Part shown: piece after piece, positions 8,831 through 54,434 of the stretch
Numbering within the stretch: the stretch's first letter is position 1
Layout of the letters: each line of letters begins with the position of its first letter
From: Amphiscolops sp. MND2022
Taxonomy: Eukaryota
Assembly: GCA_964187785.1 (NCBI GenBank)
Contig: OZ076415.1
Span: 8,928,001 to 8,992,000 of the forward strand
Direction: 5' to 3'
DNA: 64,000 bases
Made by a program: the position numbers and the translations under genes
The notes under the pieces: model-generated
The model's database searches: none
What the model saw: the letters and a program-made list of their open reading frames with translations, nothing else
Told to the model about the DNA's origin: nothing

Positions 8831-9906
8831 GTTGAAAAAAATTCATGCAAGACTGCAAACATTTCTTTCAAAAAGACCGTTTTTTTAACTCGAATTTCCA
8901 CTGATTCAAAATACATGCTCTTTCACTGTAAGCCTTCGAAAAAAAGCTGCTAAGGCTGAACGTCCCTAATGGTTGAAAAAAATAAGCACAACAAAACATT
9001 CAACTGAAAAAGATATGAGATGAAAAATGAAAAAATCATTGCAAAATAGAAAAAAAACGATTTATACATTCAGTCCCGTAACTCTGCTTTATGTCTAAAT
9101 ATTGTTTATGGCATACCTAAATGTTAGAATATAAAACAAAGAAAGCGCTGCGAAGTTCGGGGGATGGGGCTTGTTCGGGTATTTCAAGAGTGTCATCAGC
9201 AATGGCAGTTACACGAGAAAAAATTTAGACCCCTTTTGAATCCCCAGGATGGCAAAATATGAGAAAAATGTCCTCAGCTACTCACTTTTTCCATTGAAAA
9301 CATGCATCTTTTCAATTTTGCTATATTCTCAATATATTTTGTTATTCACAGAAAGGCTACATGATTTTGATAAAACTAATACAGTTGACTCTCATTACTG
9401 CACAATCCTGGTACAATACAAAAGCCGCTACAGCGCTATTGGAAATCAATCCCCATTGTTTTATTTTCCGCCCATATTTCATATGGGAAAGGAAAATATT
9501 TAAATCAAACGGGTTTTTTTTTTACAAAATTTGCCAAGATTTTATTTATATTTAAATTTAAGGGTGTTACCCATAGAATTCAACCCACATAAATTTAGCT
9601 TCGTGCGATATGTATTTGTAGAGATTTTTGAAGTTTTTTTAAAAAATGACGAAAATGACCCCTTAATGACAAAATGACCCCTTAATGACAAAAATTCCCA
9701 AATTTCTCATTTTTAAACGTTTTTATGCAATTTTTGCCATTTTTTTGAGAGACACCGCGAATTAGAAAAATGGACAAGATGAATCGAAGCTTTCTTTTCT
9801 TCGAACTTCTCAGCGTTTTTATAGTGCATTAGTTATTCTTGAGCCTCATTTATGTAGTTGTAGAACAGTTCGGGGCGGAAAATATCCCGCTCCTCAGCGG
9901 GCGTCT

Positions 9907-10119
9907 TGTTGAGAGAACTAAACAAAATTCTCAATCGACATGATATTAACTCAATTCGTTCATGAACTAATCATACTTCAATTGACTTTTACAATGCTAT
10001 TCAATTTCTTTGTTTGTTCACACTTTTGTCAATTCTCACGAAATAAAGTTGAGTTCTACTTATTCCCGCTTTTCTAGCAAACAGAAAACAAATTGATTAA
10101 ACAACTTTATTGAGAAACA
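9907..10119 (+). repeat. 5' LTR of the Bel/Pao element (213 bp)
   Basis: TGTTGAGAGAAC...TTGAGAAACA, identical to 16868-17083 except for a 3-bp indel. Confidence 0.97.
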
Positions 10120-10122
10120 TTT

Positions 10123-10134
10123 TGGTGCCGCGAC
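10123..10134 (+). promoter_or_regulatory. Primer-binding site, tRNA-His-like
   Basis: TGGTGCCGCGAC lies 3 nt after the 5' LTR. It differs at one position from TGGTGCCGTGAC, the complement of a typical tRNA-His 3' end. Confidence 0.7.
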
Positions 10135-10153
10135 AACCCGCGAACAGAACCCA

Positions 10154-13100
10154 ATGGCAGACATACTGCAAAGAACAAGAGCTGGTCACATCAGCGTAGT
10201 TACATGTCAAGAAAACAACACGAAGCAGATCTTCGAGAAAGATCCATCGTCAGTCTCAAGTTTAGAATTATCAAAACTCAAATTCAGTCTCAAAAGATGC
10301 AAGGAACAACAAGAGAAAATCAACACACTCAATCAAGAAATTCTTCAAGGGCTTGAAACAGCTGAAGTAACAGATGATGCAATTCAAAGAGAGCATGACA
10401 GAATCAACACAAATGATTTCAAGGTTGGCAGTTTCATTCAAATGCTCGAAGATTTCATCGAAAAAATTGAGACGCCAGTAGCTGACGCTGATGATGCAGA
10501 CGATCGAAGCTTGACCCACTCAGGGTCCAGGAATGTTTCACTTAAGTTGCCAAAGATTACTCTACCGACTTTTTCTGGCAAATATAGTGAATGGACGCCA
10601 TTTTTCGATCTATTTCAAAACACTGTCGATTCCAATAGATCCCTGAATGACATTCAAAAGCTACAGTATCTGAAGACCTCTCTCAAGGATCAACCAGCGA
10701 GACTCCTTTCACATCTCCCCACAACAAGTGCAAATTATGATGTGGCTTTGAGAATCCTCAAGGAAAGGTATGACAACAAACGTATGATTATTCGCTCTCA
10801 TCTTGACGCCATCGTCAAATTCAGCCCTATGCAGCATGAATCAGCTGATCAACTCCGTAAATTAATTACTGTATTTATGGAGAACTCATTGGCTCTCACA
10901 GCTTTGGGAGAAGACGTTGACGCTGCAGACTACATTTGGGTCTACTTGCTAGCGGAGAAGCTAGATTCTGAAACTAGACGCCAATGGGAGCTACACAGCC
11001 CTAGCGACAAGCGACAAACGGCAGACGATTTGCTGAAATTCCTTGAAGAACGAGCACGAGCCTTGGACTTCTCTATGCCAAAGAACACCGACACCGCAAA
11101 AGCAAAAGACACCGCAAGGTTCAAGGACAAGGGTAACGTGCAAGTCTACCACAGCCAAGCAACAACGAAATGTCCCAAATGCAGCGAGAACCATGGAATA
11201 TTCAACTGTGGCGATTTCAACTCGTTATCTATTGAAGATAGGGTTCAATTCGTCAAAAACAACAAACTGTGCTTCAATTGCTTGCGAACCGGTCACAGTA
11301 GTAAGGATTGCAAGTCAAAATCAGGATGTCGTATATGCAGAAAACGACACAACACGCTCCTCCATCGTCCCCTGGCTCTAAAAAAGGAAGAAGTGACACC
11401 CCAGTCCTGTTTGGGTCATGGGGGATACACTTCATGTTCAGTTACTCTACTACCCACAGCCGTCGTCCAGGTGAAGACTCTCAAGGACAAAGTAGTGTCG
11501 GTGCGTGCCTTATTGGACAGTGGCTCACAGACAACTTGTATTACTGCCAAATGCAGGGATCGTTTGGGATTACAACCAAGGCAAGCTGATATCTGTGTCA
11601 CTGGAATCGGAGGTAATATCTCAGCGAAATCAGCAGCAATTGTGGGACTACAAATTGTTACACCGAGACAAGAGGAAATTGCAACCACAGCAGTGGTACT
11701 CAATGAAGTTACCAAGGCATTACCAAGCTATCAAGTCAATGACAAAAGTCTTGACGCTGTGAAAGATCTCAAGTGGGCAGATCCAGACTTCAAGACGCCA
11801 GGTGAAATTGACGTCATTCTCGGTGGTGATATTTATGAGCAAATTGTTGGAGAAGAAAAACGAGCAATAACCAAGGAATTATTTGCTCGAAACACAGCAT
11901 TTGGTTGGGTGGTGTCCGGCAAGGTCTCACAGGGCAATCCAACAGTAGTACAGACATTCCATGTGACATTGGATGATCAATTGACAAGGTTCTGGGAACT
12001 TGAAGAGATTCCTCAGAAGGCAAACCTCATGACAGATGATGAAAAGGCTTGTGAACGACTTTTCGAAGAGACGATCTTAGTGAAAGACAACCGATTCATT
12101 GTACAGCTTCCATTCAGGACTCCAGTAGTACTCGGTGACAGTCTTGAGCAGGCAAAGAAGAGATTCTCTTATCTCGAAAGAAGACTCGATGCCAAGCCAG
12201 ACTTACGAAAAAGATATCAAGCATTCATTCAAGAGTTTTTTGATAATGATCATATCGAAGAAGTCCCTTCAGACAAGGTTGAGTGTGCTCCAGACCAATG
12301 CTATTACCTACCTCATCATTGTGTCTTCAAGGAAGATTCCACTACCACCAAGTTACGAGTTGTATTTGATGGCTCTGCAAAGACCACTAATGGAATATCG
12401 ATCAATGAAGCGATGATGGTGGGCCCAGTAGTGCAAGATGACCTCTTCTCAATCATTACACGGTTCAGATTCTACAAGGTTGCACTCTCAGCTGATATTG
12501 AGAAGATGTACCGTCAGGTCGGTCTCAAGGAAGATCACAGAGATTTTCATCGACTTCTCTGGAGAAACACATCACAAGACCCACTCAAGCACCTTCGATT
12601 AACTCGTATTATCTATGGAGTATCATGTTCAGCTCATCTTTCAACTCGGTGTTTGACTGAGACTGCAAACAGGACTCAGAAGCCTCATGTTGCCGACGCT
12701 CTTCGACAAGCATTCTATGTTGATGACTTTCTAGGAGGTGCAGACTCTCTGGAAGAAGCACAACAACTCATTCAAGACCTCCGAGATGAGCTTTCGAACT
12801 ATGGATTCCCGTTGCGGAAGTGGTCATCAAGTGATCCTGAACTAATCAAGAGTCTTCCGGCGCATCTTCGAGCAGAGAATGATGACTTAAAGTTATTCGC
12901 TGAAGATTACAAAGTCAAGGCGTTGGGAATTTTTTGGCAACCAAATCTCGATCAATTCGTCTTCAAATGTTCACTCGAGGAGAGAAAAGAGCTCACAAAA
13001 CGAAATTTACTCTCATCCACATCGAAACTTTTTGACCCCTTAGGATGGCTGAGTCCAATCATCATCCAGTTCAAGATTCTCATGCAACAGATTTGGGTGC

Positions 13101-15352
13101 GTGGTCTCGATTGGGACCAACCATTGCCAGACGACATCATGAATACATGGACAGACTTACGAGCTGGTCTTTCTGTGATCCAAGGCATTAAAATCCCTAG
13201 AGCAGTCATCGCTGGGAACTTGGTGAAGTTACAACTTCATGTCTTTTGTGATGCTTCTGAGAAGGCATATGCAGCAGTCATCTATTCACGAGCTAGTGAC
13301 CAATTGGGTTATGTGACGGTGTCAATTTTGTCGTCGAAAACCCGAGTTGCTCCAGTAAAAACAGTTTCATTACCAAGACTTGAGCTCTGTGGAGCTGAAG
13401 TTGCAGCCAAACTAGCTTCTAGCATGACGAGAATTCTTCAAGTCGTCCAACATGAAATTACACTCCATGCTTGGACTGACTCTACAATCGTCTTACAGTG
13501 GATAGCTCAGCTACCAAGAACATGGTCAACCTTTGTGGCCAATCGTGTCGCTAAGATCCAGGAAGTTCTGCCAAGATCAAGATGGAAGCACGTCCCATCA
13601 CTAGAGAATCCTGCCGATTTAGCATCACGTGGTTGCAGTGCCTCGCACCTAGCACAGTCAAATCTCTGGTGGACTGGCCCACACTGGCTTCACGATGATC
13701 AATCTTCATGGCCAGACACAGCCCCACCAGAGGAGGAGCCACTAGAAAGAAGAACAAACATTCATGTTCTGACAGTAGTCAAAGAGCCAGATAACAAACT
13801 CATTTCGGTTGAAAGACTCAACGACATACGGAAAGTGTTTCGCATCGTTGCATATGTGATACATTTCGTGCAAAGACTCCAAAGAAAAACAAAGACAGAT
13901 CCATTGCATCCAGACAAGGTGAATCAAGCCAAATTTCATATTCTACCCATCGATCAACAAGAAAATTTTCCAACAGAGTACAAGCAACTGAAGGAGAAGC
14001 AGAGCCTCCTGAAGAAGAATCAGCTACAGAATTTGGCTCCTTTCTTTGATCCAGACTACAACGTCATCAGAGTCGGAGGTCGGCTCAGTCAATCACTCTA
14101 CAGCGAAAGCAAGAAGTTTCCTCTCCTAGTATCAAAGAATTCAAAGCTTGTCAATCTCATTATTCGACAATTTCATGAAGCCTCGCTTCATGGAGGAGGA
14201 CAGTTAACACTGAATCTCATCAGACAAGAATACTGGATTACTCAAGCAAAACCTCTAGTAAACAACTTCATCAAACATTGCCTCACTTGCTTCAGATTCA
14301 ACTTTTCCCCACCAGTACAACTTATGGGAGATCTTCCCACCGAGCGAATCACACCCTCCAGACCTTTCACGCATACTGGCTTGGACTTCGCTGGACACTT
14401 TTGGGTAAAGATCGCTGCAGCAGACGAAATCAAAGAGGTCAAATACTACATCGCAGTGTTCGTGTGTCTGAGTACCAAGGCTGTTCATCTTGAGTCCGTA
14501 GCGAGTCTCGCCAAAGAAGATTGTATCTTCGCATTGAATCGATTTATCGCTCGTCGTGGAATGCCATCAAAGATTTTAAGCGATAATGGAACCAACTTCC
14601 TAGGCGCGAGAAGTGACCTGATAAAAATAGAAGCACTTCTGAACAAAGATGATAAAAATCATTCGATCATCAACTTCGTCACCGAGAAAAATTGCGAATG
14701 GATCACAATCCCCCCGCGTGCTCCGCATTTCGGTGGGCTATGGGAAGCTGCAGTTAAGAGCATGAAGAGACATCTCAGACGTGTTGTGGGAACACAAATA
14801 TTGCAACTCGACGAATTCCAGACAATCATGGCTCAAATCGAAGCAGTCCTAAATTCAAGACCTTTGTGCGCACTCTCTAATGATCCCAATGATCCAATCG
14901 CCTTGACTCCCGCTCACTTTTTGATCGGCGACAATATGCTCTCGATGCCCTCTGGATCAACCCGTTCAATAACGATGACCAAAAGGTACAAGTTGATGAA
15001 GAAAATTCAAGATGACTTTTGGAAGTTCTGGAAAAGAGACTATTTAACAGAATTACAAGTCCGGAAGAAATGGTTTCAAAACGGTCCTGAAATTAGTGTA
15101 GGTGACCTAGTACTTCTCGCAGAGGACAATCAGCCCCCTCTCCATTGGAAAACTGGCAGAGTGACAGAAGTTTATGAAGGCAATGAAAATGTTGTGAGAG
15201 TCTGTAAAGTTAAGACACCCACAACAACTGTGATAAGACCCGTGGTCAAGTTACGCAAGCTTCCAGTTGAGCCGCTAGTTAATACGGGACAGTCTGGGTC
15301 AACATCAGTGCCTCAAAACGGCATACTTCTGGGAGAATGCATCAAAACGTGA
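10154..15352 (+). CDS. Bel/Pao Gag-Pro-RT-RNaseH-Integrase polyprotein, 1732 aa
   Basis: Gag KLPKITLPTFSGKYSEW; triple Cys/His cluster (CPKCSENH..C, CFNCLRTGH..C, CRICRKRHNTLLH); protease LLDSGS; RT FYVDDF; RH FCDASEKAY; IN zinc finger HEASLHGG..CLTC and catalytic GLDFAG / SDNGTNF / LWEAAVK. Confidence 0.97.
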   Translation: MADILQRTRAGHISVVTCQENNTKQIFEKDPSSVSSLELSKLKFSLKRCKEQQEKINTLNQEILQGLETAEVTDDAIQREHDRINTNDFKVGSFIQMLEDFIEKIETPVADADDADDRSLTHSGSRNVSLKLPKITLPTFSGKYSEWTPFFDLFQNTVDSNRSLNDIQKLQYLKTSLKDQPARLLSHLPTTSANYDVALRILKERYDNKRMIIRSHLDAIVKFSPMQHESADQLRKLITVFMENSLALTALGEDVDAADYIWVYLLAEKLDSETRRQWELHSPSDKRQTADDLLKFLEERARALDFSMPKNTDTAKAKDTARFKDKGNVQVYHSQATTKCPKCSENHGIFNCGDFNSLSIEDRVQFVKNNKLCFNCLRTGHSSKDCKSKSGCRICRKRHNTLLHRPLALKKEEVTPQSCLGHGGYTSCSVTLLPTAVVQVKTLKDKVVSVRALLDSGSQTTCITAKCRDRLGLQPRQADICVTGIGGNISAKSAAIVGLQIVTPRQEEIATTAVVLNEVTKALPSYQVNDKSLDAVKDLKWADPDFKTPGEIDVILGGDIYEQIVGEEKRAITKELFARNTAFGWVVSGKVSQGNPTVVQTFHVTLDDQLTRFWELEEIPQKANLMTDDEKACERLFEETILVKDNRFIVQLPFRTPVVLGDSLEQAKKRFSYLERRLDAKPDLRKRYQAFIQEFFDNDHIEEVPSDKVECAPDQCYYLPHHCVFKEDSTTTKLRVVFDGSAKTTNGISINEAMMVGPVVQDDLFSIITRFRFYKVALSADIEKMYRQVGLKEDHRDFHRLLWRNTSQDPLKHLRLTRIIYGVSCSAHLSTRCLTETANRTQKPHVADALRQAFYVDDFLGGADSLEEAQQLIQDLRDELSNYGFPLRKWSSSDPELIKSLPAHLRAENDDLKLFAEDYKVKALGIFWQPNLDQFVFKCSLEERKELTKRNLLSSTSKLFDPLGWLSPIIIQFKILMQQIWVRGLDWDQPLPDDIMNTWTDLRAGLSVIQGIKIPRAVIAGNLVKLQLHVFCDASEKAYAAVIYSRASDQLGYVTVSILSSKTRVAPVKTVSLPRLELCGAEVAAKLASSMTRILQVVQHEITLHAWTDSTIVLQWIAQLPRTWSTFVANRVAKIQEVLPRSRWKHVPSLENPADLASRGCSASHLAQSNLWWTGPHWLHDDQSSWPDTAPPEEEPLERRTNIHVLTVVKEPDNKLISVERLNDIRKVFRIVAYVIHFVQRLQRKTKTDPLHPDKVNQAKFHILPIDQQENFPTEYKQLKEKQSLLKKNQLQNLAPFFDPDYNVIRVGGRLSQSLYSESKKFPLLVSKNSKLVNLIIRQFHEASLHGGGQLTLNLIRQEYWITQAKPLVNNFIKHCLTCFRFNFSPPVQLMGDLPTERITPSRPFTHTGLDFAGHFWVKIAAADEIKEVKYYIAVFVCLSTKAVHLESVASLAKEDCIFALNRFIARRGMPSKILSDNGTNFLGARSDLIKIEALLNKDDKNHSIINFVTEKNCEWITIPPRAPHFGGLWEAAVKSMKRHLRRVVGTQILQLDEFQTIMAQIEAVLNSRPLCALSNDPNDPIALTPAHFLIGDNMLSMPSGSTRSITMTKRYKLMKKIQDDFWKFWKRDYLTELQVRKKWFQNGPEISVGDLVLLAEDNQPPLHWKTGRVTEVYEGNENVVRVCKVKTPTTTVIRPVVKLRKLPVEPLVNTGQSGSTSVPQNGILLGECIKT

Positions 15353-15379
15353 TTTGGGTCCTCTTTTTGAACGCAAACA

Positions 15380-15402
15380 AAGTGTATCCCCCATGACCCA
15401 AA
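15380..15402 (+). other. 3'-UTR element perfectly complementary (23/23) to 11410-11432 in the same element; second copy at 15557-15577
   Basis: AAGTGTATCCCCCATGACCCAAA is the reverse complement of TTTGGGTCATGGGGGATACACTT. Confidence 0.9.
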
Positions 15403-15845
15403 TCAGATCCCACGCATAAAAATTCAACGGAATGCTTACCTATCATTTTCTCGTGCCTCCAGTGCAAGCTCGACCCCTACGAAAGAGTATTATGCACGTT
15501 GTGATTACTCTTTTTGTCGTCATTTTGAATATTTCACCTCAATATATTCAGGCACAAAGTGTATCCCCAGTGACCCATTTGAAGTTTTCTACAGAAAAAT
15601 CATCCTAATCGACTTCCGTGATGTCCATTGTGAAAACATTACGACTCATTACACCCTTGAATTGAATTATCAATTGACTTATGTTCATTTGCTTACAATA
15701 GTAATGGATTATCAGTTTCGGTAATCTATTACCTCAAGTTTATAGTTGTTTGTTATATTGAACTCCGAAGCATTCAGTATTCACTATCGCATCCTATAGC
15801 ATTATGCTCTCCCACGGATATAGAATTGATTATACTAACTCACGA

Positions 15846-16457
15846 CTACAAAGCATCACTTCTCCTCATTCCAACTCTCCCTCTTCTTGAGGCCTTGAGT
15901 CGCTGCTCTTCGACACGTCTCGGGTCTGTGGACAACTCCAGGTACCACATAGAACACACTTGACTCTCATGGGGTTTCGTCCATGTCAACACTAGATTAC
16001 ACCATCCATAAGGCAGATACAGAGTGTTAGTGCCATCTAGAACACCAAAGAAGATTTGACTCTTCTGTCGTTTGGAAAGACCTCGAAGAAACTGCACTGT
16101 GTCTGTGAATCCTTTCTCCGAATCGTCATCCCCACACAACCCCTGCAGTAGAGCCCCGCAGTTGCCAGCTGGACACAGGAGCCACAGCTTCTCTCCTCCT
16201 GTCAGGCAATTCAGAGCATCGGCTTCATCATCCAAATCATAGTGAAAAGTTTTCACCGAAGTTCTCTCAACTTGAATGATTTTGACTGGATGTTCCACTG
16301 CTCCTGGCCATGAATGTGAGGCAGATCCGCTCCTCAACTGAACTCCTCCCCTGGTGCGGCTAGGAAGCTCCGCACAGTTCCTGCCACTACTACCTTCAGT
16401 GAAGAGTGACTCATATCCACCCACAGACTCAATGTCTTTGAGTGACATCAGTTGATT
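15846..16457 (-). CDS. Antisense cargo gene, coding exon 2: JmjC/cupin-like 2OG-Fe(II) oxygenase domain
   Basis: TFHYD...LN.LTGGEKLWLLCP and TLYLPYGWCNLVL align by eye with the JMJD6/KDM2-type patterns HxD...N...G.K.W.L.P and T.F.P.GWWH.V. Open frame with no stops. Confidence 0.7.
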   Translation of the reverse strand, partial: NQLMSLKDIESVGGYESLFTEGSSGRNCAELPSRTRGGVQLRSGSASHSWPGAVEHPVKIIQVERTSVKTFHYDLDDEADALNCLTGGEKLWLLCPAGNCGALLQGLCGDDDSEKGFTDTVQFLRGLSKRQKSQIFFGVLDGTNTLYLPYGWCNLVLTWTKPHESQVCSMWYLELSTDPRRVEEQRLKASRRGRVGMRRSDAL

Positions 16458-16530
16458 CTAAAAGACACAATCAACATATCAATTAGGTTGATGCAATATT
16501 ATCTTCAGCCAACTCATAGTCAATACCCAC
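16458..16530 (-). other. Predicted 73-nt GT-AG intron of the antisense gene
   Basis: Donor ATG|GTGGGT, branch-like CTAAT (16486-16482) and acceptor TTGTGTCTTTTAG|. Phase-0 splicing removes the stop of ORF 16483-16821 and joins it in frame to ORF 15846-16448. Confidence 0.65.
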
Positions 16531-16821
16531 CATTGCATGCTTGGGAAGTGTCACAAGTTGGCCCTCAAGCAGTGCAGCCATTCCTCGGTCGCTTTGAACC
16601 TGTTGGCAAGTCCTCTTCTCAAGTGCCCTCAATCCCAGTCTCCCACTGATAACCTCTTGCCAGAATTCACCTGGTGACTCAGTTCTTCCTGAAGCACCCC
16701 TCGTTCCTCCTCTGATTTCTCCATAACGAGGGAGCCTCGATGCTCTACCCGTCCTTGACCTGCTTTTCTCCTCCCTCCTTACTGTCACAACCAAATCTTC
16801 AAATTCGTCACTGGAGCTCAT
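16531..16821 (-). CDS. Antisense cargo gene, coding exon 1 (97 aa, Arg/Ser/Gly-rich basic N-terminus)
   Basis: ATG at 16821 is preceded by an acceptor-like CTTTAATTTTCAG| (AG at 16829-16828). The spliced product would be 300 aa. Confidence 0.6.
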
Positions 16822-16854
16822 AACAATCTGAAAATTAAAGTATAAATATACTTC

Positions 16855-16867
16855 AAGGGGCCCAGGA
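16855..16867 (+). promoter_or_regulatory. Polypurine tract-like site of the Bel/Pao element
   Basis: AAGGGGCCCAGGA immediately precedes the 3' LTR. Confidence 0.6.
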
Positions 16868-17083
16868 TGTTGAGAGAACTAAACAAAATTCTCAATCGAC
16901 ATGATATTAACAACTCAATTCGTTCATGAACTAATCATACTTCAATTGACTTTTACAATGCTATTCAATTTCTTTGTTTGTTCACACTTTTGTCAATTCT
17001 CACGAAATAAAGTTGAGTTCTACTTATTCCCGCTTTTCTAGCAAACAGAAAACAAATTGATTAAACAACTTTATTGAGAAACA
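16868..17083 (+). repeat. 3' LTR of the Bel/Pao element (216 bp)
   Basis: Matches 9907-10119 with one 3-bp insertion (ATATTAACAACTC vs ATATTAACTC). Confidence 0.97.
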
Positions 17084-17659
17084 CCCATTAATTTATACAT
17101 GTAATACGCAGTATGTTAATTTTTTTGTTATTGCTCGTTATTGCGCACATAGTCCCCAAATGGTCCCACATAGTCCCCAAAGGCTGCCACAAAGTCCCAT
17201 GAGAGTCAACTGTAGACTCCTTGAGGTGATGGGTTCAAAGTATATTATAGTTTGATGCTAAAGATGAAACTTTATGAGATGATATTCAATTGGTTGAGGT
17301 GATAAAATAGTTTTATTTTTTTCATCTGTTTTTGTCGAATATTAATTTCATAGACTTCCCGAAAGGAAATCTCAGTAGTTACATGGTTAAATGGAACATT
17401 GAAACGAACTGTTTTACATTTGACAAAAAGTAGTCGAATATAATGAAAAGAATTCCAGTTAAACGATTCTTTCCATTTTTTTCGTCGGCGCTTTATGAAA
17501 TGAAACACGACTATTATAGCGACTCTTCTTTTCAATCCACACGAACTGACCAAAATAGTTTTTAAAAGTTCTACCAAATATTATGGTGTCAAATTGCACC
17601 ATTTGGCCTAGCGAACTGGTCCAAAACGGTTTTTCCTGTTTTCCCGCGCAACATACCAT

Positions 17660-38615: not shown

Positions 38616-39724
38616 TAGTGAAACAAAATTATTGTTGAGTTATTTTGTATTAATTTGATATGATTCGGAGCAATTTATAATTCGGAGCAATTTAATGTAG
38701 ATAGAGAATGTTGTGATCAAATTTATTGATTTCAGAAAAGAAAAAATATGAGTTGAAAATTGGAAAAATGATATTCGTTGAAGTAGTGATTTTTAGAGAT
38801 GTTAAAGGAGCAAGTGAAAAAGGAGAACTTAAAGAAGAGAAAATACTTTTAGAGATAATGGAGTTATGAAAAATTAAGAGTAGGTTGTCAAAACTCATGA
38901 AAGAAGAACAAGTGAAATGTCAAATGAATAGATCTAAGAACAAAAGAAACTAGTAGGAAGAAGTGTCAAGAGAAAAGGGAAAATGAATGATATATGTTAA
39001 TTAGGATCGAAAAATATAATTGTGTAAGAAGTCAATGAAAGATAAGATATAGGGAATGGAGACAGTTGTTATCAAAGGGACTGAAAGGATTTCAGGTATG
39101 ATCGATAAAAGATTTGAAAAGAGAAAGACAAGAACTCTGTGAGAGGGGAAAAGATTCAAAAAAGGAAGAATATTTTTCAAAGTATTGGTTATTATATATG
39201 AAGGTGTAAACGGGAGTAATTACCGAAGTAACTGAATGCAGATGAAAGTGGTTAAAAAGTGGATTGAAAAGAAATAGTGGTTGGAAATTTGATTTGAAGA
39301 AAATTTACCAATAGGAGAGAAGAAATTTAAGATGAAGTGAAATGGAGAGGAGTTTCAAGTAAAACAAGTTTTTTGAGAAAGTCGTTAACATGGAGTGTGG
39401 AGAGTGTTAAATTTTGAATATCTGTTGAATGAAGTTGAAGTAAGGATTGGAGATTACGGAATGTGTCAAAAATATAGGTTTAAGATAACAAAAGGATCGG
39501 TATTAGGAGCAATTTCAACGTGAGGACGGAGTAGAGTAAGAATTTCTGACACGAATTTGTCAGTAGGGCAGGAGAAGGAGTTGATACAAACGTTAGGATT
39601 TGCAGTTTGGAGAACATAAGAAGTAGAGGGAGGGGAATTGTTGAAGAAGGAGCCTGAGAAGGTTCAGATACATTATTAGGAGGAGTATGTTTAGGAAGAG
39701 ACTGGAAAATTTCATCTGAGACAT

Positions 39725-40891
39725 TTAAAGAGAAGTATTTATATTGTTTTTCAAAATGAATGAGGAGAGTTTTGCAATAATGAAATTGAGTTGGACGAGA
39801 GAATAATGTTTGTGAATTAGAGCTGTATATAGAGAGCGGGAATGATCATCAAGAGGTGTTTCCACTAATTTGTTCATTTTCGGAAAGAAATTGGGAACAG
39901 CATTAGGAATGTGGGTTCGAAGAAGAAAATCATCATTGACATTGAGAGCTTCTTGAGGAACGAATAACGGACGAGTAGGGTCATGGTATGATGAGAGAAT
40001 AAAATATTGTTTGACAGGGTCATAATTACGAATTGTTCCGATTGTGAAGAGATGGTTTAAGGAATAGTGAGAATGGTATGAAAACGGAGAAGTAAATTTG
40101 TGGTTTTGAAAAATGAAATTTTGGGGGTGTTTTTGTTCAAGAAAGAGTTGATAAGTTTGATGGTGAAGTTTTTTAACAGAAGGAGTTGTGGTTATATCGT
40201 TAGGATTAGTATTTAGGTCGTGGTGAGTTGGTTTAGGAAAATTAAATTGAAATTGAAAGAAACGAATACGATTATTCTGCCAAAAAGCGAGTTGTGGTAA
40301 GTTTTTGGAAGCATACGCAACATAGTGGTCAAAATTACGATCTTGAGGGAAGCGAAATTTATAAGTAGTAGGGGTCATATATAATGAAGGGAGGTTAGCT
40401 TTAAAGTTCGGATGGGTACGGAGGAATTCATCTGTCAGAATATTGGATTGAGAAGGAGTTTTTAATGGATGAAGAATACGAGGTAAGATACCAGAATCAA
40501 TGAAGAGAGGATCTCCAAGAATATTATATTTCTTTTTAGGAGGAATTGGATGATTATCGATAGTAATATGAAGAATATTTGGAGGCGGAGTAGGAGACTG
40601 ACGAGTTTTAATATTAGTAGAGGGTGGTTTAGTGAGAGACTGAGAGGTAGTAGAATTTCCATTTACAGTAGGTTCTGGAGTATTGTTAGTATCAAGAGGA
40701 AGTGAATCATTGACAAGGGGCATATCAAGAGTACCAGATTTAAGATAAAAAGGAGGCGACAAGGAAGCGATGCTTGACAGAAGTTCTTCTTCTGGATTTA
40801 TAGTTACCTTTTTGGAGTTAGAAAGAAGAAAAAGGAAAGGTGGGAAAAAGTTTAGTATAAATAAACAACTAAGAAAATGAAGGTGATACAA
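39725..40891 (-). CDS. 388-aa accessory ORF downstream of env, unknown function
   Basis: Uninterrupted ORF with a hydrophobic N-terminus, a P/S/T-rich linker and a complex globular-looking C-terminal half. Confidence 0.65.
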   Translation of the reverse strand: MYHLHFLSCLFILNFFPPFLFLLSNSKKVTINPEEELLSSIASLSPPFYLKSGTLDMPLVNDSLPLDTNNTPEPTVNGNSTTSQSLTKPPSTNIKTRQSPTPPPNILHITIDNHPIPPKKKYNILGDPLFIDSGILPRILHPLKTPSQSNILTDEFLRTHPNFKANLPSLYMTPTTYKFRFPQDRNFDHYVAYASKNLPQLAFWQNNRIRFFQFQFNFPKPTHHDLNTNPNDITTTPSVKKLHHQTYQLFLEQKHPQNFIFQNHKFTSPFSYHSHYSLNHLFTIGTIRNYDPVKQYFILSSYHDPTRPLFVPQEALNVNDDFLLRTHIPNAVPNFFPKMNKLVETPLDDHSRSLYTALIHKHYSLVQLNFIIAKLSSFILKNNINTSL

Positions 40892-41154
40892 GTGTGCGTG
40901 GTGTGGGGACTAGAAAAGATTATAAATATAAGTAAGATTTTCGTGAAAAATTCAAGTCAAATGATTGTTGAGAAAGGAAGGAGAATGGACCGAAGGAGAA
41001 GCGAGAATGATGACAAATGAAATGGGAAGGAAGTTAAGATAACAGTAATTATTATGTAAAGTAGGTAAAATATGAATATTCAAGATCAATTCGTTGGAAC
41101 TTAAGTTAGGGTATTAAAATTCAGATAGAGAATGATGTAATTAAAATGGATAAA

Positions 41155-43930
41155 TTATTCAGGAGGAAAACGGCAAGAAGTATAAACTTTGACAGGACTG
41201 TCAGGTGGGTCAAAAATATTATTGACAGAAGTTAACGGGATGTCATTAGTTTTGATTGGCGGCGGAGTAGAGGGATAAATTTTAGTAGATTGCCAGAGGT
41301 TATGTATGGGGGAATCAGTGGAGGAATTATCACAATTGGTGTAATCAGGAGGAGGAGAATTATGCAAATAAAGGGGAGAAGATAATGAAGATATTTGAGG
41401 GGGTCGAGGAGAAAGAATATTATGAGGGGGAAGGTGCGAATTATAATTTGGAGGAGGGGGCGAAGAATCTTCGGTGTTAGAGGTTTGTGCATGATCAGTG
41501 GGAGTAGAATGAAGAACAGAAGAAGAAAGGGATTTGAATGAAGAAGAAGTAGCTGAAGATCTTTGCATTGGGGTTTTCTTTTTTAAATTGAGGAGTTTTG
41601 TTTTATTGTTAGTATGATACGTACGAGGACGAGGTTTGGGGCTAGAAGAAATAGTGTGAGTTTTCGCTAATGGGGAATGGGGTGAATCTGAATCGTCAGA
41701 TTCTGAGTGTGAATTAGATGATTTAAGCATAGCGGTCATCATAGTTTGGGTAATAGTTCCAAAGAAACCAAATCCTAAAGCAGTTATAACAGAGATTTGT
41801 TTTTTAAGCAAATTTCGAACAGTGAATGAACGATAAATACTAAAGAGTGTGTTGAAAGCGAATTGTAAGAAAAGGGCGGTAGAGAAATAGATTCCACATT
41901 GGGCTAAAATATAGCATGGATAGCCAAAAAGTTTTATGAATGCATCAGTAAACCAGTCAGGAGAGAAAAATGGGGTTAAGTTTAACATGTAGTCGTGAAG
42001 ACCAATTCGAAGTGATCGGTAAGGATTATCTGGAAAAGAACTAGCAGATTGTTGATTCATAAATTCATAGCTAATAGCTTTTCCAAGGAGTTGAAGAGTA
42101 TTGTCAGAAAGTTTAGTAAATAAAACTCGATTCCAAAAATGTTTTAGTTCCTCTTGAGAATTAATGCAGTGAAGGTATTAGGACTAATAGCAGTTTGGAT
42201 TTGGGTTGGTTCAAAAGGGAGAGGGGGATCTTTTTTAATAGGTTGAGGAGTTAAAACATAATATTGATCGGTATCTGGGTCAGGAGAAATAACATTTTGA
42301 GGATTATTTCCACAAGGAATTTGATTGGCATTTTCGAAAGTTTGACGTGTAAAAGGGTCGACATACAAAACGGTGTCAAAAGATAATTGACAGGAATTTT
42401 GTCATACCATTGATCAGCAATGTATAAATGTGAAAGGTGATGAGGACAATCATATAACCAGGCAGTAGAGCCTTCAACATATAAAAAGATACTACGGTTT
42501 TGGGTTAAGAGGAAACCAGCAAGTTGTGGATTTTTAACAGACATGGCAAGGATTGTTAAAAGTTGGGTTCGTTCGACTTCACATTTAGTATGAAGAGTAT
42601 TAAGTTCAGCAACGGACATGCTTTTAAGGACATGATTTATAGAATAGTCAATTTTAGTGTTAATATGAGCTTCGTAATCAATGGTGGCAAAATTATTTGA
42701 AGAGTTTAGAGCCGGGAAAAGAAAATTGTTTTGGGTATGAATTAATTTTCCAGATATTAACTGGGAAGAAAGTTGATTGTATTGTTCATTTTGTGGAAGT
42801 TGAAGAGGATTAGGTTTACCAGTATGCATGTTAAAAACTTCTTTATATGTTATGAAAAGATCAGGATATTGAGTGAGATGTAAAGGAGTGGGTTTATTAC
42901 AAAACATTTTATTTTCAGGGAAATTTTCAAAACGAGAGAGGCGGGTTTGAGATTTGGTATCGTGATAAAGAGTATCTGTTGGAATAGTAGAGGAGTGATT
43001 ATTGAAAAAGTGTTCAGTTTCAAGCCAATAACGGTTATTGAGCTTAGACAATCTACCAATAAAGGAGGTAATGGAAAAGGTTAAACAAAGTTCTTCAGGA
43101 AACCAAACAATGGTGAATGGTGTTAATATAGTTGGCTTACAAAAACCATCATCGTGGAGACAAGGTAAAGTATATCCATGGTAAATTAGTTTATTGTCTT
43201 TATCATCATAAGTAATTTCAATTTCTTTTACGACAAGAGACCAGTTATCTTTTTCGATAATGTTTTCATAGCCGTCCCAACAAACAGCTTTTTCTTTTAG
43301 AGTTGAGCTTAAAACTAGTTGTGAATTGGTGATCCAAGCAAAAGCACCATAATGAAAGGTATTTAGTTTAGTAATACGAAAAGGGGTTTGTTTTGTTTCT
43401 AAAAGGCGTTGTTTTTGAATATCATCGAAGAATGTAAAGGAATTGGAGTAATTAAAAGCGTCTAGTTGAGGGTTGTTAGTTCCGTTCAAATGGCGGATAG
43501 CATGTTTGCATTCTGTAGGATCGAGAGTACGGTGACGTTCCATAGTTTTTTGGTGATAATCAGTACGATCATGACGACGATATTTGTAATCCGATTGAGC
43601 ACAGACAAATTTTTTACGTTTGACATAAGCTTCGCAGGTCCAAGCTTTAAGACGTTTAGCTTTAGTGCGAACAAAAACATTGACAATAGCACGGGTACTT
43701 TCAAAAGCAGATGGGGCTTGAGCGCATGGTTGGACCCGAGTAAGACTGAACTGTCTTAAATTATGTTGTTTAGAACAACCGTAGTGAGAGACTAGAAGGT
43801 CCGAAATATGAGGATCATTGGGATCTACATGATCAGAGGAGGAAGGAATTTGAGAAAAGACTAAGAAAAGGGAAGAAAGAAAATAGAAGAGCGAGTGAAT
43901 AAAGAGGAAATGCATTTTAAAATTGGGCAT
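41155..43930 (-). pseudogene. env: class III fusion glycoprotein-like (chuvirus G / herpes gB-like), frameshifted near 42360 and broken near 42144
   Basis: Signal peptide MHFLFIHSLFYFLSSLFLVFS. Cys pattern HYGCSK..VQPC..WTC..VC..EC, LPCLHDDGFC..WFPEELC, CEVERTQLL..LAM..PQLAG..G..WLYDC..YDKIPVNY, then YVDPFTRQ..IPC. C-terminal TM segment and S/P-rich tail in ORF 41155-42060. Confidence 0.75.
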
Positions 43931-43959
43931 TATATTTCAAAAAGGTGAGGGTATTAAGA

Positions 43960-45500
43960 ATAGTAATGGAGCCGTGTAAAAGACGAAAGGGAGGATGGTC
44001 GCTGACAAAAAGACTAAGATTTGTGGCAATAAAAGGATGAGGAAGAGATTTAAAATTAACTGTTGTATGTGAAGGAATGGGGTGAGGACTTAAGTTATGA
44101 AATTTTACGGTAATTTCAAATTTAAGTTCTAAGTTCGTGTCTTCAAGGCGAAGAAATTCTTTACGGCGACTTACATTTGAAATATGGGGATTCGAATTAA
44201 GCTTATGGGTGGCAAGGTAAAGAAAGCGAGGATCTTGGCGGGGGCTACTGACAAGAGTGTTGTTTACGATTAAAGGGTAATCAACACGATTAGGTGTAGG
44301 AGGAGTAGAGTATTGATCAGTAGTAAGATCAATGTTGAGTAAATGACTATCAGATGAAAGAATAGTGGAATTTTGAGAGTGGGGACGAGAAAAAAGGTGA
44401 CCAGAGTGATTATAAGAAGAAATAGAAGAACGTTGAGAAAAAGCAGTGTCAATACACGAAGTTGGAGAGTTTTCCGCGTTAGAGAGAGAGTCTGAAGAAA
44501 GAGATTGAGCATGGTGGCGTAAAAGAGAAGAGTTAGTACTTGCGAGAGAAGGAGAAGGACGACGATTTTTGCCAAGATTATATCAATGACGAAGCGGAGG
44601 GTGAAGAGTAGATTCGGAAGTAGTGTCAAGAAGGTTATCCAAAGAAGAAGTTGTATTTTTAGAGGCGGAATTTGAAGGAGGAAGACGTGGATAAAGAAGA
44701 GATCAAGTAGTTGAATCGATTTCACTTAAGTGGGACTTTTTCTGAAGAGAGTCAAGGGATTCAAGTGCAGGGATTTTGAGAGGTTTAGGTGGGGGAAGTG
44801 AAGGTTGAGAGGAGATATGAGAACAAGGTGGAGGGATTGAAAGAGAATTATCTAACAGAGAGCGTCTGCGAAAAGATTTTATGGAGGTAGGTATAAGTTT
44901 TGGTTTAGGAAGAGTTGGATTATTAATATTTCTAAGGAGGATAGGGTTAATATCACTAGGATCAGGGATATGAAAAGAAGAAGGAGGTGGAGAATGGGTA
45001 GGGGTTATATTGAAAGGGGAGTCAGTATCGGAAAGTGAGAGAGTTAAAGAAGTTTGAGTTTGTTGAGGAATAGAAGTTTTAGGAGGAGCGTGAGTTGGGG
45101 TATTAACAGGGGTGGTATCTAAAGAGGGGGTGATTGGTATAGGGTTCAGGGGAGGTTGTTGAGGATTTGGTAAAAAAAAAAACTTTGTGATGAAGATAGA
45201 GTATCACTTGAAACAGAAGAAGAGGGTTGAGAAGAAGAACCAGAAAAAAATACAGTAAGATCCAGGATGGAAACAAAAGGGAAATATATTAAAACTTCTA
45301 TTAGGTATGAAAAGATGAACAGAGATTGATATTGGAAGGGAGCAAAAATGTAGATGGAAAGTAGTGAAGAGAGATTTGAGAAAAATACTAATTCTGTTTT
45401 GATGAAATCAAGCTTTGATGAGAGCAACCGTTCAGTTAGATTTCACTAAGGTAAAGTGAATAAAGGTGCATAAGATACCGCTACTAATTAGATTGTCATG
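43960..45500 (-). pseudogene. Decayed P/S/T-rich reading frame(s) between pol and env
   Basis: About 1.5 kb of broken low-complexity frames with no recognised motif. Confidence 0.3.
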
Positions 45501-45578
45501 TGTCGGACTATGATAGAAGTCTAGACTATTGGGCAATACGTAAAGATAGGAAATCCAAATAAAAAAATGAATATTTAA

Positions 45579-48500
45579 TCAAGGTGGAAAATCGATGTTT
45601 GGTTTGGATGAATTATAATGTCGAGGAGGGAGTGAACGTAAATTATATGGGGAATGAGGAACACGTTTATAAGTGGATTCATTTTGAGGGTTAAGTGATG
45701 GATAGGAGGAAATATCAGGAGGATCAGCAACACGAGGGAAGAACTTAGGAAAGGAATCATTTGAAGAGTTTGAGTAATAAATGGGGTTTGGAAGCATTTC
45801 AAAATCAGAGTCGTGAGAATCAATTGTATTATCGAGGTTATCTTGAGAAAAAGAATGTGAAGGGTTTTGGTAGATAGGAGTAGAGGTGGGGACATTATCT
45901 ATTTTATCTTGTAAGGAAGAATAATGTGAAAAATTTTGATATCTAGGAATAGGAGTGGTAGAATTATTGAATTGTTTAATATTTGAGGATGTAGGGGTTT
46001 GAGAATGATTTGGATTGTGTTGTAAATCTAATGAGGAAAATTGAGAAAAGGTATCTTGGTAAGGTTCAGTATCAGGGTTATCAATAAGAGAAGGGGTAGA
46101 ATGGTAGTGTTTAATATATGGAAAAATTATAGGTTCTTTGGGATAATATGGTAGAATATGATTTCGATGGGTTTGAAATGTAGAACCATCTTGAGACAGG
46201 AGTTCATACGTTACTTCAGAGAGATGGTTAATTATTTTATATGGGCCAATTCGGAGAGGTTTGAGCTTTTTTGAAAAATTAACAGGTTCAAAATTCGTAT
46301 GGATGACAAAAGTATTAAGAGGTAATTGTTTTAAATGAATTGTTTCGAATGTAGAACTTTGAGAATTGAGTTTATGATTTAAATGGCGGTGGACAGTTGA
46401 ATATATTTCTTACATTGCAGTCTCAGCTGCCAAAAGCCATGGGGAGATAGGTTTATCGAAGAGTGAGTGGAAGAAGGGATTAAGGTCTTGAGTGCTATAA
46501 TGTAAATGAGGGGGAAGAGACTCACAATAAGTTGCGATACAATTTTTTGAAGCATCACGAGATAGGTTGAGAGAAAAGGTAAGAGGTATACGAGGATGGG
46601 TATGGAAAACAATCTGATAAGGGAAAAGTTTAAGTTGGGAAAGAGGTGTTGTATTATGGGCATATGCGTACATTTGAGTTTGAAATGACCAGTTAGTAGG
46701 AGGATTTTGTAAAAATATTTGGAGATGAGTTCCAAGATTTCGGTTTTGAACTTCCACTAAACCGTTTGTCCACGAAGAGTAAGGAGTTCGAGGTGAGTGA
46801 TTAATATGGAAAAGAGAACATAGATGAGCCATATCTTGTTTGACATTTTCAGTACCTCGGTCTGTAACTAGCTATTGAGGAGGACCAAACTTTGTGATCC
46901 AGTGATGGAGGAGGGTTTGAATTGCATATTTAGAGGTAATATTAGGAGCAGGGTTAGTAACCACAAAGTGACTAAATGCGTCAATAATTACAAAAATATA
47001 AGAATTGCTTTGAGATGATGGGGAAATAGGGCCTTTTAGTGTCCATAGAGATCCGGTAGTTGAAGTGAGTAGCACTCTCATAAAAAGGAAGGGGAGGAGA
47101 AATGTTTTGGGGTTTAATAGGAAATTGTTTATTAGTTTGACATTCAATGCAGTCATGGATGAAAATAGAGAACCATAAAGGTAAATGAGGGATAAAATAA
47201 AATTGGTTAAATGTCCTAATAGATAGTTTTTCACCTGAATGACCATGAGAATGTGTTTTACTAAATGCAGCATAAAAAAGTTTAAATGGTAAACATGTAC
47301 GTGTTTGAATAATAGAGGGTTGAGTTTTAATAAAGAGTTCTTCAAAAATTCGAGAGTTAGGTGTATAATATTGAATAAGATGAGAGTTTGGATCAATATA
47401 TAAATGTTGGAATTGTCTATAATATGTATATAAAAAGGAGTTTGCTTTAATAACTGGAGTCAAGGAATAAGGTCTTTGTTTTTGTTTTAACCATTTATAT
47501 ACTGCAGAAAGGACAGGATCATCCTTTTGAGCTTGAAATAGAATGGGTACTGTCAAAAAGGTGTCGGAAGAGAAGAAGAAATTATCAAATGCTTTACAGT
47601 GAGCAAAGAAGGAAGGATCAAAAAATGGTAAAAATTGAGTATGTATAGGCTTTGGAGAAGTTGGGGTTATAGCATTACTGTCAATAGTATTATTAACAAT
47701 AGGAGGGGAGTTGGTAAGGTTGGTTAAGATATCTTGCGACTAGTTGAAATCGTTAAAATAATGGTGTTGTATTTCAGTAAAAAGGGTGTGAAGTTCATGA
47801 GGTGGTTGCAAACAATGTTGAGGAAATCGTTTAAGAACGGGATCGTCCGTGTCATATAAATTAGTTTCATCTAAAAGAGGATTTTTTGGAGAAAAAGTTT
47901 TAACTTTGTTTTTTACAGGTTTTTCGTATTTATTTGAGAATGAGGAAACAGATTGAAAAGAAAAGAATCAAGAGGAGTATATTTAACGACATTGCCTTTA
48001 TCTTGGATACGGAGTGTGAATTGATCATCATCTCCATAATCAGCTAAGATTAAATGTGAGTCATTTTTTTGTGTAGGGAGTACATCTTCATTTTTTATTA
48101 GGTAGTGAATGGGTTAAAATATTATCGTTTTTGAGTTGTAGGAAATCAATATGTGGAGGGAGAGTTTTGTGTTGGAGTTGGCATGTTTTAGTATTAATAG
48201 TTGAAAAATCTCTACTAAGCATATCAGCAACAGTAAAGTTTGTACCAGCTGTGTGAATTATTTAAATGTTTGAAAATTTGGATAATAGCATTTGAGCTTC
48301 ATTTTGTCTAGGAGTTAGGTTACCTTTACGAGTGAAAAGGAAAAGAATAGGATTGTGATCTGTAAAAACAGTTATCGGGAATTTGGAGCCAATTATAATA
48401 TATTCGTATTGGGAAAGGGCAAAGGTAATGGCACAAGGTTCTCTATCATAGGTAGAAAGTTTTTGTTCTTGGGTTGTTAAAATACGAGAAATATAGGAAA

Positions 48501-50671: not shown

Positions 50672-50679
50672 GTTAATTT

Positions 50680-53458: not shown

Positions 53459-54228
53459 TAGGAGTGTCTATCAGGATTGTAATATAGCCGAATCCAATCC
53501 ATAATAACTTCAGGATGGACCGATGGTTCAGTAGGGAGAAGAAAAATAGAGATGAATTTGTTGGCGAATGTAGGTATAAAATGAGAAGAGAGACGGGTGA
53601 AAGTATATAGGTATAGTGATAAGAAGAAGGGAAAGGAAAAATAGTTGAAGAAGGGCAAGGCAAGGATTGGGGTGAAGGAAGAGGAGGTTCATACAAAAAG
53701 GAAGGGGAAAAGAAAAGAGAGTGGTAAAAGTATAGATGAAAATAATAAGTTAAGTATGAATAGAAAAGGAATAGGGGAGAAGGAAATGGGGAAATGGAAG
53801 AAGAAAGGGAGTTAGTGGAAGAGAGATTTGACAATTTTTTCAATGAGGAGCATTTAGAAAACTAGCATTGCAAAAATGTATGAAACGAAAAGAATAATGG
53901 TGGCAAGGTTTTCGGTAAGAAACATAAATGAAAGAAGCAGGGATTATGCGCTATATTGTTCAATGACATGAGGAAGGAAAGGGAGAATAAATTTATCAAC
54001 AAGAAGAAGGACAATGGCACAAAGACCAAAAAAGTAGAGGAGGATTAGACAAATACAAACGGAGTCATTAAGGGAAGGCATGGAAAATTTGGGAGGAGGT
54101 AGAAATGAGAAGGAATATTAAAGAGAAAATTTTATGATAGAAAAATGGAAGGTATTAAAGAAAATGAAAAAAGGGTGTAGCAGGGAAAGGTAAAATCACG
54201 TTAAGGAGATTAGGACGGAAGAAGAAAG

Positions 54229-54434
54229 TGTACCAGCGCGTAGCTGAATCACAAAAGGTGATTAGTACCGAAGAGAATGTTGTACCAGCAAAGAGCTGAA
54301 TCACTTGGAAATGATTAGTACTGAAAAGATATGGTGTACCGGCTACTAGGTCGAACCACTTTATGTGATTAGTACAGAAGAAGGTTTGAGCTGTGTACCG
54401 ACAAGGAGTCGAATCACTGTGTGTGATTAGTACA
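54229..54434. repeat. Four ~52-59-bp structured repeats in the 5' leader (three-way junction fold)
   Basis: Units start at 54229, 54281, 54335 and 54394: GTAC-[4-bp hairpin]-[AATCAC/GTGATT hairpin]-A-GTAC, with variable loops. Confidence 0.85.

Follow-up and report, generated by a model that had tools for sequence, protein, structure and literature searches.

The question raised by this locus is whether a retrotransposon carries, on the strand opposite to its own coding region, a gene for an oxygenase of the JmjC type, and what such a gene would do. The window (the whole stretch of 64,000 nucleotides analysed here, positions 8,928,001 to 8,992,000 of contig OZ076415.1 of Amphiscolops sp. MND2022) contains a Bel/Pao long terminal repeat (LTR) retrotransposon at 9907-17083, and a predicted two-exon gene is located on the minus strand of this element, between pol and the 3' LTR. 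That the gene is a conserved JmjC accessory gene of such elements is nearly certain. Its proposed role, the erasure of repressive chromatin marks, is advanced more cautiously and is weighed below against alternative explanations.

Anatomy of the antisense gene

Two open frames were found on the minus strand between pol and the 3' LTR, at 16483-16821 (112 amino acids) and 15846-16448 (200 amino acids). Joined across a predicted intron, they give a stop-free product of 97 + 203 = 300 amino acids (sequence reading and script). The parts of the gene model and the segment upstream of it are:

16531..16821, minus strand: exon 1, 97 codons, with an Arg-rich N-terminal stretch followed by the start of the folded domain, assigned by homology to the N-terminal parts of the homologues L032, P0011 and P0012
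16458..16530, minus strand: predicted intron, 73 nt, GTGGGT...TCTTTTAG, phase 0 at both ends, assigned by sequence reading and script
15846..16457, minus strand: exon 2, 203 codons plus stop (coding 16457-15849, stop 15848-15846)
16822..16867, no strand assigned: segment of 46 nt between the antisense ATG and the 3' LTR, with a purine-rich tract before the LTR on the plus strand

The predicted intron starts with GTGGGT and ends with TTTTAG, and the predicted spliced product is colinear from end to end, across the exon junction, with L032, P0011 and P0012, all of which are intronless. Exon 2 contains the codons for the iron-binding His (16244-16242) and Asp (16238-16236) and, on the strand after H-x-D, for the Lys expected to bind the C5 carboxylate of 2-oxoglutarate (2OG; 16190-16188). 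On its minus strand, the segment 16822-16867 carries a TATATTTATA motif as well as TTTCAG immediately upstream of the ATG. The antisense start codon lies 47 nt inside the LTR edge, and the gene is therefore presumably driven from the LTR or the adjoining segment. No second JmjC cassette was detected elsewhere in the window by profile scan.

The initial annotation of this stretch had joined the same two frames into a 300-amino-acid gene model and had placed the His and Asp codons as above; its coordinates proved exact, the motifs that it quoted were all present, and the splice model predicted here agrees with it. Its description of the N-terminus as basic and Arg-rich stood in part: the stretch is rich in Arg, but the charges of the first 60 residues nearly cancel out, with 11 Arg and Lys versus 10 Asp and Glu.

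Conservation across the genome

The gene has at least 150 six-frame matches in the genome (1.07 Gb), with identities of 27-100% and mostly in open frames, and the genomic context was read at 38 of these loci. At 34 of them, the gene and a Bel/Pao pol were convergent, the gene facing the 3' end of pol, and the identity of that pol to the one in the window ranged from 41% to 100%. Pairwise identities of pol and cassette were correlated (Spearman 0.82, 105 pairs), which indicates that the cassette diverged together with its element. The ratio of nonsynonymous to synonymous substitution rates (dN/dS) was 0.19-0.21 for the pairs with usable dS. In deep pairs, the proportion of nonsynonymous differences (pN) was 0.21-0.41 versus 0.60-0.93 for synonymous differences (pS), with saturation in all but one deep pair. 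Given the at least 150 mostly open homologous frames and the purifying selection, the open frames of the gene are far beyond chance, and the elements carry the cassette as a conserved part and not as an accident of one copy. The possibility that it might be unique to the window copy or evolve neutrally, which had been named at the outset as a reason to abandon the prediction, did not materialise.

In alignment A1, which comprises 12 lineages, the residues H72, D74, G88, K90 and W92 are invariant, and the distal His, H154, is found in every lineage but the window copy, at identities down to 25%. The full iron-binding triad was present in an open frame in 21 of the 30 best copies. A GT..AG intron was located at the identical position in seven lineages, and lineages sharing it are 32-56% identical to the window's exon 2 at the protein level; the L032 lineage, by contrast, is intronless and reads straight through the homologous residues. 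Introns last in a retroelement only when they are antisense to its genomic RNA, and for this reason the conserved splice signals on the minus strand speak indirectly for expression of the gene from that strand. With regard to a host origin, the sole match to the Jumonji helical domain in the genome (C4:53020497-53020652) had no JmjC-core exon within 1.5 kb that matched the transposon profile.

Family assignment and predicted fold

The family lies at the edge of the Pfam models JmjC (PF02373) and Cupin_8 (PF13621). Three lineages (L031, L012 and L020) score barely above the Cupin_8 cut-off (27.7-30.5 bits versus 27.4), and no Pfam match was obtained for the window copy's sibling L002 or for L032, P0011 and P0012. 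An exhaustive HMMER profile search of 1.84 billion representative proteins yielded 95 proteins at E <= 0.001, among them some ordinary cellular JmjC proteins; it is the weak end of these 95 that consists of proteins above the Pfam JmjC/Cupin_8 cut-offs. Protein language-model features gave a value of 0.95 to JmjC/Cupin_8 clusters.

For comparison with the PDB, a profile (A4) was built from 47 sequences, all of them transposon-borne copies. Its best matches were PHF8 (3.8e-9), KDM7A (3.3e-8), the Caenorhabditis elegans protein ceKDM7A (1.7e-5) and PHF2 (3.3e-5), followed by the weaker matches JMJD7 (0.018), KDM2A (0.02) and JMJD6 (0.065), with FIH and JMJD5 not among the matches at E <= 0.1. 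The H-x-D, G-x-K and distal-His strands were in register in these alignments. Compared with the KDM7/PHF8/PHF2 (JHDM1D-type) demethylases, which are both the best profile match and the top structural matches of the transposon protein, the H-x-D motif, the 2OG lysine in G-x-K and the distal-His strand P-x-G-W-x-H-x-V-x-T were aligned residue for residue, G88, K90 and W92 falling into the block aligned to G-E-K of PHF8. The smaller profile A1 gave the same ranking with weaker E-values. Two results were set aside. Profile A3, which included six cellular JmjC proteins, matched JMJD6 at 8e-24, was discounted as biased by its cellular rows and was redone as A4. NF-kB p105, the sole result of a single-sequence phmmer search against the PDB, was a chance match of 15 residues.

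The structure of the intronless paralog L032 was predicted with AlphaFold2 from 57 aligned sequences (predicted local distance difference test score, pLDDT, 88.7; predicted template modelling score, pTM, 0.83). The model is well folded from about residue 40, and its chain ends about 50 residues after the distal-His strand, with one helix. The top PDB matches obtained with Foldseek were all JmjC enzymes (PHF2, KDM7A, ceKDM7A, JMJD5 and FIH; probability 1.0). VIA-align gave Z scores of 14.2 for PHF2, 13.9 for ceKDM7A, 13.7 for PHF8, 13.6 for KDM2A and 13.3 each for FIH and JMJD5, the overall range being 12.6-14.2 across 190-250 residues, at identities of 9-13% in the structural alignments. Judged from this model, the fold is the JmjC double-stranded beta-helix, and by sequence comparison the nearest subfamily appears to be KDM7/PHF. 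Matches to a PHD finger or a Jumonji helical domain were not found in any family member examined. The initial proposal of a JmjC protein of the KDM2/PHF8 type was thus supported, A4 favouring PHF8, KDM7A and PHF2 over JMJD6, and the beta-helix that it had suggested looking for with AlphaFold and Foldseek was recovered, on the model of the paralog.

The host element

The features of the element outside the antisense gene are:

9907..10119, plus strand: 5' LTR, 213 nt, TG...CA, defined by the direct repeats D1/D2 and alignment to the 3' LTR
10154..15352, plus strand: intact gag-pol open reading frame (ORF) of Bel/Pao type, 1732 amino acids, assigned by its Pfam domains
15377..15577, plus strand: spacer between the convergent genes, with two copies of a 24-nt motif at 15377-15400 and 15554-15577 (repeat families D3, I1 and I2)
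16868..17083, plus strand: 3' LTR, 216 nt, TG..CA, defined by repeat alignment

The gag-pol product matched DUF1759 (gag), zf-CCHC, Asp_protease_2 (aspartyl protease), RVT_1, Peptidase_A17 (Pao), Integrase_H2C2 and DUF5641, whereas RNase H gave no separate match in this Pfam scan. The element thus has the composition of a Bel/Pao retrotransposon, with LTRs around a gag-pol that contains the Pao-type peptidase A17, reverse transcriptase (RT), integrase and DUF5641. A single 3-bp indel is the sole difference between the two aligned LTRs. Both the intact ORF and the near-identical LTRs agree with the earlier description of the element as intact and young. No target-site duplication was found at its ends (GGCGTCT upstream at 9900-9906, CCCATTA downstream at 17084-17090), and this finding, together with the near-identical LTRs, may mean that copies recombined after insertion.

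In four DNA runs, the LTR region 16850-17097 had a depth 5-10 times that of the element interior, and the contigs showed loose ends or branches at 16868 and 17083, the same LTR borders as above. These data indicate that there are far more LTR copies, as solo LTRs or in related elements, than full elements.

The 24-nt motif of the spacer is the reverse complement of 11410-11432, at the gag/protease junction. Its first copy is perfectly complementary over 23 nt; the second follows 177 nt after the first, at 90-92% identity. The motif could be a recombination or template-switch site, or an element for long-range RNA pairing.

Exchange of the cassette between element lineages

A sibling element with a different cassette was found in the same genome:

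C10:2110404-2114006 (G000), strand not stated: L013, sibling element with a different cassette

The DNA of L013 is 96.3% identical to that of the window element up to 15400, 48 nt beyond the pol stop codon, and 92.7% identical from 16824, 3 nt upstream of the antisense ATG, through the LTR, with no DNA similarity between 15400 and 16824. At the protein level, its cassette shares 50% identity with the window's exon 2 and 66% with the cassette of the L031 lineage. The exchanged block comprises the whole antisense coding unit and its 3' region, whereas the upstream segment and the LTR stay with the backbone. For this reason, the antisense promoter is placed tentatively in 16822-16867 or in the LTR. 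The left breakpoint coincides with the end of the first copy of the 24-nt motif (15400), and L013 retains one copy there. The sequence comparison shows a clean exchange of the cassette as a module between element lineages. At the position of the intron donor, L013 reads ATG|ATAACA, not GT, and this copy may fail to be spliced.

Loss of the distal iron ligand in the window copy

At the position of the family's distal iron-binding His, the window copy encodes Asn (AAT, 15998-15996, within TLYLPYGWCNLV). His is found at this position in the 97%-identical siblings L002 and L003, in the database protein P0001 (98% identical) and in every other aligned lineage. At 15998, the entire depth in contigs from four public DNA runs of the organism supports the His codon, and the Asn is therefore private to the window copy or to the assembly of this individual. 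The initial annotation had named the HxD...H motif of JmjC enzymes but had overlooked this replacement. Apart from this change, the copy is intact and very young. The enzyme that it encodes is probably inactive, and siblings could at best make up for the loss.

A further case of ligand loss was observed at C8:31636696-31648460 (G000; L009, L010 and L011), where three cassettes are arranged in tandem, about 4.1 kb apart. Their frames are open, both iron-binding His residues are replaced (F-L-Y-D and G-W-A-N), and remnants of pol were detected beside only one of the three.

Relatives in other assemblies

Two contigs of the assembly GCA_013332895.1 (L039 and L040) carry the cassette convergent to pol, in the layout seen in the window. 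Of the proteins of this assembly, P0011 is at most 66% identical to the copies of the Amphiscolops genome with which it was compared, and P0003 shares 52% identity with the window's exon 2. Another relative, P0012, was found with one and the same sequence in seven contigs, six of which are shown; these come from at least two metagenome runs of Tara Oceans and from other metagenome assemblies in ENA. P0012 is at most 51% identical to anything in the Amphiscolops genome. In L039 (3-2562), a short gap of LTR size follows the cassette, and directly after it the gag of another element starts on the pol strand; this looks like two tandem elements sharing one LTR.

The protein P0025 (294 amino acids) is encoded in L048 (ENA contig ERZ26859043, 8001-16479) with no Bel/Pao pol within 8 kb. 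It adjoins an ORF of 1228 amino acids, with C2H2/BED zinc fingers and endonuclease VII, and an ORF resembling Ulp1 and adenovirus protease. This arrangement suggests that the JmjC family may also be carried by a DNA-transposon-like element in another organism.

Proposed function and alternative explanations

The best explanation as a whole, to which we assign a probability of about 0.6, is that the gene is an accessory gene of a diversified Bel/Pao clade and forms its own transcription unit opposite gag-pol, between pol and the 3' LTR. The antisense transcript would start in or beside the 3' LTR and would be spliced, the intron being kept through every round of retrotransposition, since the genomic RNA of the element has the opposite sense. 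The 300-amino-acid product would be a minimal JmjC Fe(II)/2OG oxygenase without reader domains that acts in trans after entry into the nucleus, most likely by removing repressive lysine methylation over element copies or by otherwise modifying a host protein, with the outcome that the elements stay transcribable. The cassette would be inherited with the element and occasionally exchanged whole between lineages, and the window copy with its Asn, most likely inactive, would depend on its siblings.

PHF8/KDM7 enzymes act on H3K9me2/1, H3K27me2 and H4K20me1, and the substrates of these closest relatives make the erasure of repressive marks the most economical function. By this analogy, anti-silencing demethylation is plausible, and histone demethylation specifically is possible, at somewhat less than even odds. 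The broadest form of the proposal, in which a whole Bel/Pao clade would encode its own histone demethylase as a self-encoded anti-silencing factor in animals, able to erase the repressive lysine methylation deposited by the host on transposon chromatin, on a cassette swapped as a module as in an arms race with host silencing, we regard as doubtful.

Several observations weigh against the proposed explanation. The window's two exons gave no Pfam match, and an AlphaFold2 model of exon 2 alone (12 sequences) reached a pLDDT of only 59.6 and was unusable for searching; the fold claim for the window protein therefore depends on homology to L032, which is colinear with it but only 27% identical. The window copy has the H-Y-D of the H-x-D/E...H triad (16244-16236) but Asn at the distal position, so that the complete triad is a property of the family as a whole. 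The only runs containing the sequence were the four public DNA runs, whose unitigs span the intron and the LTR junctions and contain no splice joints, and the 496 nt that follow the stop codon contain neither AATAAA nor ATTAAA. Transcription, splicing, nuclear action and substrate are points that we infer, and the same applies to the benefit to the element. The protein has no chromatin reader domain (PHD, Tudor or chromodomain). The structural scores of KDM7/PHF, KDM2, FIH, JMJD5 and JMJD6 differ by no more than about 1.5 Z, and structure therefore does not separate lysine demethylation from protein hydroxylation.

The last two points are also those that would be expected if the same accessory gene encoded an enzyme like FIH, JMJD5 or JMJD6 that hydroxylates proteins or RNA, acting on a host factor or on the Gag/Pol of the element. 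Such an enzyme would favour retrotransposition, or weaken a restriction factor of the host, and would leave chromatin marks untouched. FIH, JMJD5 and JMJD6 are among the top Foldseek matches, some lineages score above the cut-off of the Pfam model for JmjC proteins of the hydroxylase type (Cupin_8) but not above that of the JmjC model, and small JmjC-only proteins with known activity are mostly hydroxylases. However, the profile clearly prefers KDM7/PHF8/PHF2 (1e-9 to 1e-5) over JMJD7 and JMJD6 and does not retrieve FIH or JMJD5 at all within its threshold, and a hydroxylase is considered unlikely. The copies that have lost iron ligands could instead be taken to mean that the protein is a non-catalytic pseudo-enzyme that binds methylated histone tails or a silencing factor and blocks them, in which case the Asn copy and the copies lacking both His residues would still function. 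A non-catalytic role has been proposed for some non-canonical JmjC proteins, PHF2 naturally has a distal ligand other than His, the Asn copy resides in a very young element with intact gag-pol, and the tandem array on C8 keeps its frames open. Against this stands the invariance of the catalytic His, Asp and 2OG-binding Lys in A1, where the distal His is missing from the window copy only, a pattern expected only if catalysis matters. Moreover, the copies without these residues are single young copies or products of one local duplication, with little time for selection, and the Asn variant was not seen in the contigs of the four DNA runs. A pseudo-enzyme is thus held to be improbable.

The lack of Pfam matches to the window's exons and the restriction of the sequence to DNA contigs without splice joints would also fit a passenger, that is, a host JmjC fragment captured once and without a role, or chance open frames. 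This is largely refuted and retains hardly any credibility, given that the gene persists in element lineages with only 41-49% pol identity as well as in another organism, that it is under purifying selection with invariant catalytic residues and conserved splice sites, and that no close cellular donor is apparent, the nearest cellular proteins in the exhaustive search having E-values of 1e-4 to 1e-6.

Second retroelement in the window

A second retroelement is located on the minus strand at about 39700-54400. Its ORFs are:

48262-49098, minus strand: RT/RNase H ORF of the kind found in Gypsy-type elements
42251-43930, minus strand: ORF of 559 amino acids, matching the Monjiviricetes fusion glycoprotein family (E 5e-12)
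41155-42060, minus strand: further ORF, 301 amino acids
39725-40891, minus strand: further ORF, 388 amino acids

The profile scan detected no JmjC cassette in this env-bearing Gypsy-like element (about 39.7-54 kb).

Comparison with known systems

Despite its resemblance to the KDM7/PHF8/PHF2 demethylases, the transposon protein differs from them in being a minimal core of about 300 amino acids, without their PHD finger (an H3K4me3 reader) and Jumonji helical domain. It is encoded by a retrotransposon, shares 9-13% identity with them in structural alignments and scores below the Pfam cut-offs or close to them. Plant LTR retrotransposons reportedly contain antisense additional ORFs between pol and the 3' LTR; the position on the opposite strand is shared with the present gene, but the carriers are plant Gypsy lineages and not animal Bel/Pao elements.

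Ty3/Gypsy elements of orchids contain an extra ORF for an AlkB-type RNA demethylase of N6-methyladenosine (m6A), an Fe(II)/2OG oxygenase that is presumed to act against surveillance by the host (PMC9289625). Here, too, a lineage of LTR retrotransposons has a fixed ORF for an Fe(II)/2OG oxygenase. However, the orchid enzyme is of the AlkB and not the JmjC type and was acquired recently, by plant Gypsy elements of one genus, whereas the Bel/Pao cassette is antisense, predicted to be spliced, old and distributed across many lineages. Retrotransposons have also been described that captured DNA methyltransferases (DNMT), with Ka/Ks below 0.2 (PMC5890265), or a methyl-CpG-binding domain (MBD; PMC6673714). 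These elements resemble the present one in carrying host epigenetic parts under purifying selection, with a Ka/Ks similar to that of the Bel/Pao cassette (PMC5890265); they differ in that the domains are inside the element's own coding regions, as opposed to a separate antisense gene of the eraser type (PMC5890265, PMC6673714). JmjC is not mentioned in either paper (PMC5890265, PMC6673714).

In the full-text literature on JmjC or histone demethylase genes in retrotransposons, no report of JmjC cargo in Bel/Pao elements was found, and the initial suggestion that such cargo was undescribed holds for the full-text literature searched. New in this analysis are the assignment to KDM7/PHF from a transposon-only profile, the co-divergence statistic, the argument from the intron, the loss of the iron ligand and the modular swap. 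The family is nearly invisible in protein databases, because its ORFs of about 300 amino acids do not reach the Pfam thresholds and repeat masking would remove them.

Transposons are usually viewed as passive targets of chromatin silencing, and few retroelements are known to carry epigenetic or epitranscriptomic enzymes (DNMT, MBD, AlkB). If the proposed explanation is true, a conserved JmjC eraser gene in many lineages of an animal retrotransposon would extend that list by the demethylation or hydroxylation of histones or other proteins. The gene would also provide a testable system, with natural alleles that have or lack the iron ligand, element backbones with alternative cassettes and an antisense intron that reports expression.

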